Positions 1,341 through 4,300 of a stretch of 64,000 nt of DNA are shown here, one piece after another. How positions within the stretch are numbered: the first letter of the stretch is position 1; each line of letters starts with the position of its first letter. Under the pieces are notes generated by a model. That model saw only the letters and a program-made list of their open reading frames with translations. It had not been told where the DNA came from and searched no databases. The position numbers and the translations under genes are program-made. The DNA is from Octopus sinensis. Its lineage: Eukaryota. Location of the stretch: assembly GCF_006345805.1 (NCBI RefSeq), contig NC_043023.1:10106001-10170000 (forward strand), read 5' to 3'.

Positions 1341-4300
1341 GTTAGCGAATACATTTATATTTGTGTATATAGATATGTATATATATGTATGTGTGTGTTA
1401 TATGTATATGATATATACATACAGTTTAGTGCCCCAAATTTCGTTTCTTCATAACTGATGATTCATATTATTTTAAATAAAACTTGCTGCAAGACTTCCT
1501 TTTCTACCCCACAAAAAAACCACCCTTTCTTTAAATTTTTTTCCCCGACACAAATCCCGCTTTTCGGTTAAGGGAAATACGAATCTGCAAAAAAATTGGC
1601 AAAAATCGGCATTTTTAAATTACCCCCACCCTCATTTCCTTCATTCTTTACTTTTTTCACAATTTTTTTTTTCAGAATTTGCGGAAAAATACGGAGATGA
1701 TGATTCGGACAAAAATTTCAAAACATTTCTGTAGTTAGGGTTAGGGTTAGTGTTGGGGGAAAAAAGTCAAAGTTGAAGAATTTTGGAGGGGGTGGAAATT
1801 CCACTGCCGATTTTTTGGCAATTTTCCGGAACCTCCGTGTCCGAAATCGGGGGGTTTTTGGCAAAAAAATTCTTTAAATAAACAAATTTATGAGAAAATA
1901 GCGGTGGTGGTGGGGGAACTCTTTCAAAAGTTGCTCATTTCCTTGTGTGAGAGTGTATATATATGGATGTGAGAGTATATATATATATATATGTGTGTGT
2001 GTGTTTATATGTATATATATATGTGTGTGTGTGTCTGTGGGTACAGGTATGATATGAACCTCATTTATTTACTCCTCTCCAACTACATTCCACCTGTTTA
2101 TTAATCTGATTCTTTCTCTTTTTTTGAAATTTTTCATTTTTGCGCTGCCCCCCCCCATCCACTTGACGCCATCTTTAATGTCTTTATTGTTTATCTATTT
2201 TAGGTAACTCAGCGAAATAATGATGGTTGGACACCTCTACATCTTGCCTCACTTCATGGACACACAGACACAGCTAAACTTCTCCTACAACAAAATGGCA
2301 CTGATGTGAGGGTGGTGACCAACAATGGTTCGACACCGCTACATCTTGCCTCACTTCAGGGACACACAGACACAGCTAAACTTCTCCTACAACAAAATGG
2401 CACTGATGTGAGGGTGGTGAACAAAGATGGTTGTACACCTCTACATCTTGCCTCTAATCAAGGACACACAGACACAGCTAAACTTCTCCTACAACAAAAT
2501 GGCACTGATGTGAGGGTGGTGACCAACAATGGTCGGACACCTCTACATCTTGCCTCTTATCAAGGACACACAGACACAGCTAAACTTCTCCTACAACAAA
2601 ATGGCATCGATGCCAATAAAGTGGACAAAGCTGGTGACACTCCCCTCCATCTGGCAGTTCAAAAGTAAGTCCCCAGTGGATTTGGATTATCCAAATCTGT
2701 TTCTTTAATGTTTTCAATAACGTTTGTTTTCTTGTTTTGAGTCATTCATGTCATAATCCCACCATGGGACGTCGTGCTTCAACTCTCTCTCTCACACTCT
2801 AATGACACTGTAACCTACTTCATTAATTAATCATCATAATTATTATTGTTGCTGTTGTTACCTGACTAGATTCTTTACTTCATCTCATCCTTCGTTACCT
2901 CAACGTTACAAGTTCAAATCTTTCCTTTTCTTCTTTTCATTCCATATAAAACACCTCACCCCCTCTCTCTTATAATTTTCCTCTTTCCTCTGACCCTGGG
3001 CTAAATGCAGAATCATTCCCTTACAGTGTTTAGTTTGATCTGTTTATGTTCCAAGTTCAAATCCTGCCAGAGTATTTATTAACAACCTGGAGTGAAAATC
3101 TGTACCAGTAATATCCAGGGTTTCATTTAATAAATTGTCTTCCCTCTTTTCTCCTGTTTTTGTGTCTGATTGCTGTTGGGCAAAATACCTTGTGGTATTT
3201 ATTTACCACACTTTATGTTCAGAGTTCAAATCCTGCTGAGGTCACTTTGTCCTTCCATCTTTACTAGGCTAATAAAATACAATACCTGTCATGTACTGGG
3301 GTCCTTATAATCCACATTAACGCTTCTCCCCATCCTAAATTTCATGGCTATATAACAGTTGTTCATCATACCATATATAGATTGCCGTGTTTACTCAGGT
3401 GTGTATATATATCGTTGATCTATAATGTAGAGAGTATATCAAATATACGAGGGGGTACCCAAAAGTGGCCGGAAACGTTTCTGTAGGGCAAGGCCATTGA
3501 AGTTCAGGCTTCTGCTGCTAGAAGCCACTTGATGCGATACTCAGGCATCATCCTGCCAAGCGGCATCTTTGAGGATGGTGCTGTTACCATGTGGTGCATC
3601 TTTGTTTTGTAGGGCTTCTCCCTGTTCGAGTTTTGCAATGGCTGAAATGAAGGATCAGCTTGCTTCCATAAAATTCTGTTTTCTGCTGGAGAAAATGGCA
3701 GCCGAAACAGTTGTCATGCTTCAAACAGTTTACGAGGACACTGCCATGATGCCACGAGCAAAACACAAGATCACGAGTGGTTTTCATGCTTTTCGAATGG
3801 TCACTTGTCACTTGAGGTCCAACCTCATTCAGGGCAGTTCCAGCACTGCTACAAATAGTGGAAAACATGTCTGGGTCGATGCAGTGCTTCAAATGGGGAC
3901 TACTTTGACGGTGATAATAGTGTTAATACGTAAAACTAAGCAAAGAAAATAATATTGCAGAATTCTGGGTTCTTCTGGGTCCCCACCTCATATATATATA
4001 TATATATATATATGTATATATATATATATATATACATATATATATATATATATATATATATATATATATATATATATATATATATGTATATATATATATA
4101 TATGTATATATATATATATATATATATATATATGTATATATATATATATATGTATATATATATATATATATATATATATATATATATGTATATATATATA
4201 TATACATACGTATATATATATATATATATATATATATATATATATATATATATATATATATATATATATACACATACATATATATATATATATATATGTA

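Follow-up and report, generated by a model that had tools for sequence, protein, structure and literature searches.

An exon of near-identical ankyrin units was identified in a gene of Octopus sinensis that encodes an ankyrin-RING-death-domain protein, and the same exon was found in differing sizes at related loci of O. sinensis and Octopus vulgaris. The exon lies at positions 2204 to 2663 of the window, a stretch of 64,000 nucleotides (NCBI RefSeq assembly GCF_006345805.1, contig NC_043023.1, positions 10,106,001 to 10,170,000 of the forward strand); coordinates below are those of the window unless another sequence is named. Our reading, to which we assign a probability of roughly 55%, is that this array exon is turned over by unequal exchange and would thereby give the protein a variable target-binding surface. 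The array comprised the following elements:

2204-2663, + strand: array exon, four near-alike 102-bp (34-residue) ankyrin units and a diverged half unit; the whole exon is present in XP_036370077
2204-2305, 2306-2407, 2408-2509 and 2510-2611, + strand: array units 1 to 4, translated from 2204
2612-2663, + strand: diverged half unit (17 residues) after unit 4
2216-2257, recurring at 2318-2359, 2420-2461 and 2522-2563, + strand: variable segment, unit codons 5-18, from the per-codon tables
2258-2300, recurring at 2360-2402, 2462-2504 and 2564-2606, + strand: nucleotide-identical scaffold block (end of helix 1, turn, helix 2)

Tandem Repeats Finder detected a period of 102 bp over 2223-2606 (3.8 copies, 93% matches, no indels), and the 43-nt scaffold block GGACACACAGACACAGCTAAACTTCTCCTACAACAAAATGGCA, which encodes 14 residues, was present in four exact copies (0 expected in 100 shuffles). 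Together with the translation, this bore out an earlier note on this DNA, which had described four in-frame 102-bp ankyrin units with an identical block. Nearly all differences among the units were inside the variable segment, which comprises ankyrin positions 1-5 (the hairpin tip) and 7-14 (helix 1); the note had likewise assigned them to the beta-hairpin and the end of helix 1. The unit is 34 residues long, compared with 33 in the canonical ankyrin repeat, with the additional residue after helix 2, and the fourth unit ends with GID. Two details of the note had to be corrected. About six synonymous differences were counted among the four window units (unit codons 1, 5, 6, 11, 16, and 18), where about three had been given. 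The exon is not symmetric as had been stated, because it starts in phase 0 (acceptor ttttag/GTAACT, the slash marking the boundary) and ends in phase 2 (donor CAAAA/GTAAGT), though the 102-bp unit itself is a multiple of three.

Units were numbered so that the motif T/D-x-x-G-x-TPLH begins at ankyrin position 1, and the positions to be tested were fixed in advance as those of designed ankyrin repeat protein (DARPin) libraries, namely 2, 3, 5, 13, 14, and 33. Among the 29 units for which DNA was compared, which come from four loci including the window, high entropy was found at positions 1, 2, 3, 5, 10, 12, 13, 14, 26a (the residue added to the canonical repeat), and 28. Replacements in a single unit occurred at nine further positions, almost all of them from one O. 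sinensis locus (L005). Five of the six a-priori positions varied, compared with 6 of the 28 others (Fisher p=0.008); nonsynonymous events per site amounted to 1.26 at the a-priori positions and 0.36 elsewhere (p=1e-4), and entropy was also higher at the a-priori positions (Mann-Whitney p=4e-4). Position 33 was invariant. The three tests are in accordance with the proposal that variation occupies DARPin positions 2, 3, 5, 13, and 14, and across paralogues the variation was concentrated at the a-priori positions instead of being spread evenly over the repeat. Many of the codon changes were multi-nucleotide. When a further locus available at the protein level was included (36 units in total), 24 hairpin cassettes and 16 helix cassettes were distinguished, which formed 32 distinct combinations.

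The same array exon was found at four loci besides the window. Repeat number was not fixed among these related loci and species, with arrays of 4, 6, 7, 9, and 10 units:

Window locus, O. sinensis CM016885.1: 4 units, intact
L001, O. vulgaris OX597842.1: 9 units, three of them nucleotide-identical; unit 8 lacks 1 bp
L003, O. sinensis scaffold VCDQ01005398.1: 10 units, one of them short by one codon, frame intact
L005, O. sinensis scaffold VCDQ01005287.1: 6 units, with more scaffold replacements
P0121, O. sinensis XP_036370063, on the chromosome of the window: 7 units, protein level only

Mean identity to the array consensus was 0.89 in the window (136 residues), 0.88 in L001, 0.88 in L003, 0.89 in P0121, and 0.83 in L005. 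This measure was used as a stand-in for T-REKS PSIM, and the threshold for highly internally conserved (HIC) repeats is at least 85% over at least 100 residues. Two properties of a HIC repeat domain were found, namely internal conservation and a variation of unit number among related copies (paralogous loci, species). All four O. sinensis copies had an intact reading frame across their 400-1000 nt of repeats. Intact array open reading frames (ORFs) were present in the genome at 7536-8610 of L003 and 6563-7228 of L005, both on unplaced scaffolds. The RefSeq model P0123 leaves the frame inside the array, L005 is annotated as two genes, and in the public annotation L001 is broken up into a number of short products. 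Gene models thus seem to cope badly with these repeats.

Directly downstream of the array, 850 nt of intron differed by 1.4-2.4% among the four loci with DNA, and longer intron stretches were 92-98% identical between loci. This near-identity marks the array loci as paralogues or orthologues of very recent origin. Upstream of the array, the final 230 nt of the intron (1975-2203) differed by 5-14% from L001, L003, and L005, an asymmetry possibly due to low-complexity sequence or to a conversion boundary. The 3' part of L001, including the death-domain exon, was only about 68% identical to the window. L001 was therefore rejected as a clean orthologue of the window, and the loci are mosaics.

A wider family was also recognized, comprising dozens of proteins of O. 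sinensis and O. vulgaris, named MIB2-like and similar, most of which have the order ankyrin, RING, and death domain with diverged repeats. Relatives in Octopus bimaculoides were 46-49% identical and had ankyrin repeats and two C-terminal RINGs, without the array and without the death domain. In protein searches, no near-identical array from beyond O. sinensis and O. vulgaris was found among the best 120 matches listed of 8000 scored candidates, and a full-text literature search found no paper describing this octopus family. Further, a second, less uniform repeat type, GSKDVVELLLKHKDTDVNA, was observed in some O. vulgaris paralogues; in P0124, P0126, and P0131 the second repeat type (ALH.AC.YGSKDVVELLLKHKDTDVNA) recurs two to four times with moderate internal similarity, and its differences, too, affect the hairpin and the helix-1 end.

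Concerted evolution, which had been suggested from the window alone, was well supported together with repeat-number change. The 60-nt scaffold part differed by 2.8% between units of one locus and by 3.9% between units of different loci (permutation p=0.013), a slightly greater likeness within loci, and neighboring units were more alike than non-adjacent ones. Locus-typical states were also seen: position 26a was N in all units of the window and of P0121, and D in units 1 to 7 of the nine-unit O. vulgaris array. These states, the identical neighboring units, and the array sizes of 4 to 10 units support unequal exchange and conversion. The four-gamete test on whole hairpin cassettes versus helix cassettes found no violation, and reassortment of cassettes is therefore not demonstrated.

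Each unit boundary (2300-2311 and later ones) reads GAT/GTGAGG, a sequence that could plausibly act as a 5' splice site. In O. vulgaris, the model P0016 splices at such a unit-boundary donor, reads the exon corresponding to 5528-5564 in another frame, and joins the death-domain exon. P0016 is from an ENA-submitted O. vulgaris annotation with product names that look copied from O. sinensis matches, and the P0016 locus is frameshifted in the array; the splice is probably an annotation artefact around that frameshift. Regulated splicing at unit boundaries as a means of varying unit number was rejected, because the boundary donors are in phase 0, unlike the true exon end in phase 2, and their use would put exon 5528-5564 out of frame.

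The array exon belongs to the O. sinensis RefSeq gene "ankyrin-3-like" (XP_029652223, P0340, the longest isoform; XP_036370077, P0122). XP_036370077, "ankyrin-3-like isoform X4" of 607 residues, matched every exon of the gene in the window exactly. The protein is composed, in order, of about 11 ankyrin repeats, a RING of the IAP/MIB type, a disordered linker built from 17-residue cassettes, and, at the C-terminus, a death domain. In the full protein, Pfam matches were obtained for Ank (PF00023/clan Ank, 235.7 bits against a cut-off of 21.1), the C3HC4_3 RING (PF13920, 40.6 bits against 27), and the death domain (PF00531, 34.8 bits against 22.6), and the array units are ankyrin repeats, as had been noted (Ank, 235 bits), with a consensus-like fixed scaffold. 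The RING metal ligands C428, C431, C443, C449, and C461 were invariant in 25 family members, and H445 was found in at least 90%. The nearest solved sequences were the RINGs of cIAP1/2, MYLIP, and XIAP, and for the death domain TRADD and RIPK1 (E about 5e-5), followed by PIDD, Fas, and FADD.

The Pfam scan of full-length P0122 and P0121 contained no NACHT or NB-ARC match, only Ank, RING, and Death. The protein is therefore not an NLR, and the kinship with NLR sensors that the earlier note had implied did not hold. MIB/HERC2, ZZ, and REP domains were also absent from the Pfam scan, and in the AlphaFold2 model the N-terminus is an ankyrin cap. The protein is a derived MIB2-like ankyrin-RING protein with a death domain, neither NLR nor TRIM by membership.

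The AlphaFold2 model, built on an alignment of 25 family members, showed a continuous solenoid of about 11 repeats with paired helices in each unit, a disordered linker (residues 475-518), and death-domain helices spanning 522-599. The predicted local distance difference test score was 94-98 in the array and about 90 in the death domain. Foldseek matched the model to the 12-repeat ankyrin stacks of AnkB and AnkR (TM 0.83-0.85), and also to DARPins and to the ankyrin domain of MIB1 (8v0e, TM 0.69). According to DSSP on the model, helix 1 corresponds to unit codons 11-18 and helix 2 to unit codons 21-28. When mapped on the model, as the earlier note had proposed, the variable sites fell in the hairpin and in the C-terminal half of helix 1, the inner helix; given this helix assignment, the variable residues are predicted to line the canonical concave binding face.

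In the mechanism that we propose, unequal crossing-over and gene conversion, acting among the units as well as among gene copies of very recent origin, would expand, contract, and partly homogenize the array. Exchange of units would keep the structural scaffold almost identical, while on the concave face (hairpin tip and end of helix 1) the residues would remain or come to be distinct in almost every unit. The ankyrin groove may then serve as the only candidate recognition domain of a ubiquitin ligase, whose specificity could be altered by gain, loss, or exchange of units, and through its death domain the protein would dock to death-domain signaling assemblies. The most likely function is thus a variable target-binding surface for a ubiquitin ligase plugged into death-domain signaling. 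Its way of working would be comparable to that of TRIM5/finTRIM ligases, as TRIM-type restriction factors, and of the repeat domains of fungal NLRs. Observed here are the anatomy of the exon, the differences in array size, the placement of the variation, and the domain architecture; selection for diversity, ligand binding, E3 ubiquitin ligase activity, any immune or cell-death role, and the putative sensor function are inferred.

Diversifying selection at the variable codons, also proposed before, was examined by several counts of the ratio of nonsynonymous to synonymous change (dN/dS). Pairwise Nei-Gojobori comparison at the a-priori codons gave a nonsynonymous diversity (pN) of 0.305, compared with a synonymous diversity (pS) of 0.088 locally (bootstrap p=0.017) and 0.075 when pooled (p=0.0004), with a pN/pS of 3.5. 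By neighbor-joining and Sankoff parsimony on three trees, dN/dS was 3.8-5.1 against pooled dS (p<=1e-6) and 2.2-2.7 against segment dS (p about 0.002). Minimal events against pooled synonymous change gave 2.6 (p=0.006). The a-priori codons differed by about 30% at nonsynonymous sites, compared with about 2% in the flanking intron between loci. The proposal of diversifying selection was thus supported in part: the ratio was 2.2-5.1 in the pairwise and tree counts, and 0.9 in minimal events against local synonymous change, the most conservative count. We regard diversifying selection at these codons as likely rather than demonstrated.

Besides that count, several points weigh against a selected binding surface. 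There are only about three synonymous sites in the variable codons, and the units are not independent samples, with recombination among them biasing tree-based counts upward. Synonymous events were also clustered in codons 5-18 (p=0.002), and the genealogy of this segment may be older than that of the homogenized block. Such clustering of silent changes would fit selection sheltering old variable segments from homogenization, as is known for the peptide-binding codons of the major histocompatibility complex, and would equally fit a segment that is simply older. The other exons of the gene had a dN/dS of 0.74-0.87 between loci, and the whole family is therefore weakly constrained. The 1-bp deletion of O. 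vulgaris L001, in a short A run in unit 8 (15355-15456), breaks the frame and reflects either a pseudogene or a sequencing error, and the replacements in L005 affected scaffold positions including the conserved Gly4. Moreover, the positions that vary here, those randomized in DARPin libraries, are the least constrained positions of any ankyrin repeat.

An alternative explanation is relaxed constraint, with a young amplified repeat exon in a fast-duplicating, partly decaying family, whose units are recent copies of one another and tolerate mutations only at structurally free surface positions, where differences would accumulate by drift. The gene-wide dN/dS, an event-based ratio of about 1 at the variable codons, the O. 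vulgaris frameshift, the L005 replacements and its annotation as two genes, and the general tolerance of these positions are all consistent with such drift. It would less easily produce a nonsynonymous diversity at the variable codons that is 3-4 times the synonymous one and more than 10 times the divergence of the flanking intron, many multi-nucleotide codon changes, 32 of 36 units that are distinct at variable sites next to a nearly invariant 60-nt block, and intact frames in four O. sinensis arrays. We consider relaxed constraint a possibility that should be taken seriously, if a doubtful one.

Alternatively, the array may be a structural spacer or spring, with the unit number tuning the length of the solenoid between the N-terminus and the RING and death domain, and with incidental surface differences. 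The range of 4 to 10 units and the varying number of linker cassettes are compatible with such a role, and MIB1 binds its substrates by the N-terminal MZM/REP region, not by the ankyrin domain. The Pfam scan, however, revealed no candidate recognition domain besides the ankyrin array in this family, and the variation is non-random on the surface, being concentrated on the concave binding face, which makes a mere spacer improbable. An assembly artefact, in which the differing unit numbers and unplaced scaffolds are mis-assemblies or uncollapsed haplotypes of one locus, would fit the scaffolds of 51-58 kb that carry L003 and L005 and the O. vulgaris deletion in a short A run, but is very improbable given that arrays of at most 1.1 kb should fit in single long reads (an expectation from array length alone), that the same architecture occurs in two independent assemblies (GCA_006345805.1 and GCA_951406725.2), that RefSeq protein models match the 4-unit and 7-unit arrays exactly, that the loci differ in variable cassettes and 3' parts, and that haplotype scaffolds would themselves mean repeat-number polymorphism.

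The start of the gene lies 5.7 kb before the window, with its earlier exons in that upstream part, and its end is at 25831. In addition to the array exon, the following exons were assigned:

1184-1340, + strand: upstream ankyrin exon (52 residues), with splice consensus; identical to residues 80-131 of P0122; ends in phase 0
5528-5564, + strand: small exon that finishes the half ankyrin repeat of the array exon; matches P0122
10185-10397, + strand: ankyrin exon (Pfam Ank)
15995-16170, + strand: exon with the last ankyrin-like repeat and a pre-RING helix, ending KTFLQS(L); helical in the AlphaFold2 model
17143-17285, + strand: RING finger exon (C3HC4, IAP/MIB type; Pfam PF13920, 40.6-42.7 bits, cut-off 27)
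18135-18517, + strand: three 51-nt cassette exons with a 166-bp period (18135-18185, 18301-18351, and 18467-18517), phase 1-1
18941-19012, + strand: linker exon, (E) and 23 residues
22630-22701, + strand: first death-domain exon, (E) and 23 residues
25629-25831, + strand: last exon, remaining death domain and stop codon (Pfam PF00531)

The cassette exons encode 17 residues each (V[CY]PK..EKAV..V.ES.), and isoform X4 uses the third copy only. The tandem region of cassette exon and intron spans 18121-18603 and encodes the units of the linker between RING and death domain. Family members contained from one to about six such cassettes, with about six genomic copies at the O. vulgaris locus; the linker cassettes give the array gene exon-level variability in copy number and splicing.

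The window also contained microsatellites, long introns, and LINE-like (long interspersed nuclear element-like) ORFs, among them two long LINE/reverse-transcriptase-like ORFs inside or near the introns of the gene (12410-15274 on the - strand and 38649-41198 on the + strand). A tandem array with an 84-bp unit, in at least 135 copies (97% identity), occupied 52626-64000 and runs off the end of the window, and was also found at 34101-34647. It encodes near-identical C2H2 zinc fingers, with frameshifts splitting it into ORFs of 1454, 1112, and 1048 residues in different frames, and is preceded at about 52504 by more diverged zinc fingers. This second, much larger case of near-identical repeats in the window is possibly a zinc-finger-derived satellite. 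The paralogous locus L002 was also flanked by zinc-finger arrays. Further, a 147-bp satellite (9 copies, 97% identity) was found at 28338-29705 and a short run of three TTAGGG at 1733-1750.

To our knowledge, cephalopods lack adaptive immunity, and their innate repertoire is poorly known. Near-identical repeats that vary at their binding positions and in number are typical of recognition proteins under rapid evolution, and in fungal NLRs they are a well-documented source of recognition diversity. The array gene is a clear animal example, belonging to a cephalopod family of ubiquitin-ligase/death-domain proteins that is lineage-specific. If the arrays diversify under selection, their products would be candidate receptors or restriction factors and a natural DARPin-like library whose ligands could be searched for. 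A more speculative idea, which we put forward tentatively and consider rather doubtful in its full form, is that the ankyrin-RING-death ligases of O. vulgaris and O. sinensis act as germline-diversifying intracellular receptors or restriction factors, in which unequal exchange reshuffles the array into new binding specificities and the RING and the TRADD/RIPK1-like death domain couple recognition to ubiquitination and to cell-death or inflammatory signaling. If true, this system would parallel, in an animal and on a different chassis, the repeat system of fungal NLRs.

HIC repeats were defined in fungal NLRs of the Podospora nwd/het-e family (Dyrka et al., 2014; PMC4986451), and only 0.8% of metazoan ANK/TPR/WD proteins contain them (PMC4986451). 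The octopus array resembles the fungal repeats in having units about 85% or more identical to the consensus over more than 100 residues, in a varying repeat number (among strains in fungi, among paralogous loci and species in octopus), in signs of concerted evolution, and in hypervariable positions on the concave face of hairpin and inner helix. Unlike fungal NLRs, the octopus protein lacks NACHT/NB-ARC, has a RING and a death domain on its effector side, and belongs to an animal host.

With DARPins, the octopus array shares a fixed consensus-like scaffold, variation at positions 2, 3, 5, 13, and 14, and matches in sequence and fold to many DARPin structures. The DARPin consensus is DxxGxTPLHLAAxxGHLEIVEVLLKxGADVNAx. 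In contrast to DARPins, the octopus unit has 34 residues, position 33 is invariant, positions 1, 10, 12, 26a, and 28 vary as well, and the array is a natural one of 4-10 units inside a longer solenoid.

MIB1 and MIB2 have the same succession of an ankyrin domain and a C3HC4_3 RING, and the MIB1 ankyrin domain is a structural match; most octopus family members are publicly annotated as MIB2-like, and the O. bimaculoides relatives keep two C-terminal RINGs. The octopus protein differs from them by the absence of MIB/HERC2, ZZ, and REP, by a linker and death domain in place of the second RING, and by its lineage-specific, multi-copy family.

As in TRIM5alpha and the fish finTRIMs, the family is expanded and pairs a RING with a variable recognition module, and the combination of an IAP-type RING with a death domain is found in oyster IAPs (BIR-DD-RING; PMC8917759). 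Compared with TRIMs and mollusc IAPs, the octopus recognition domain is an ankyrin array instead of SPRY or BIR, its order is ankyrin-RING-death domain, and the system is known here from sequence alone.

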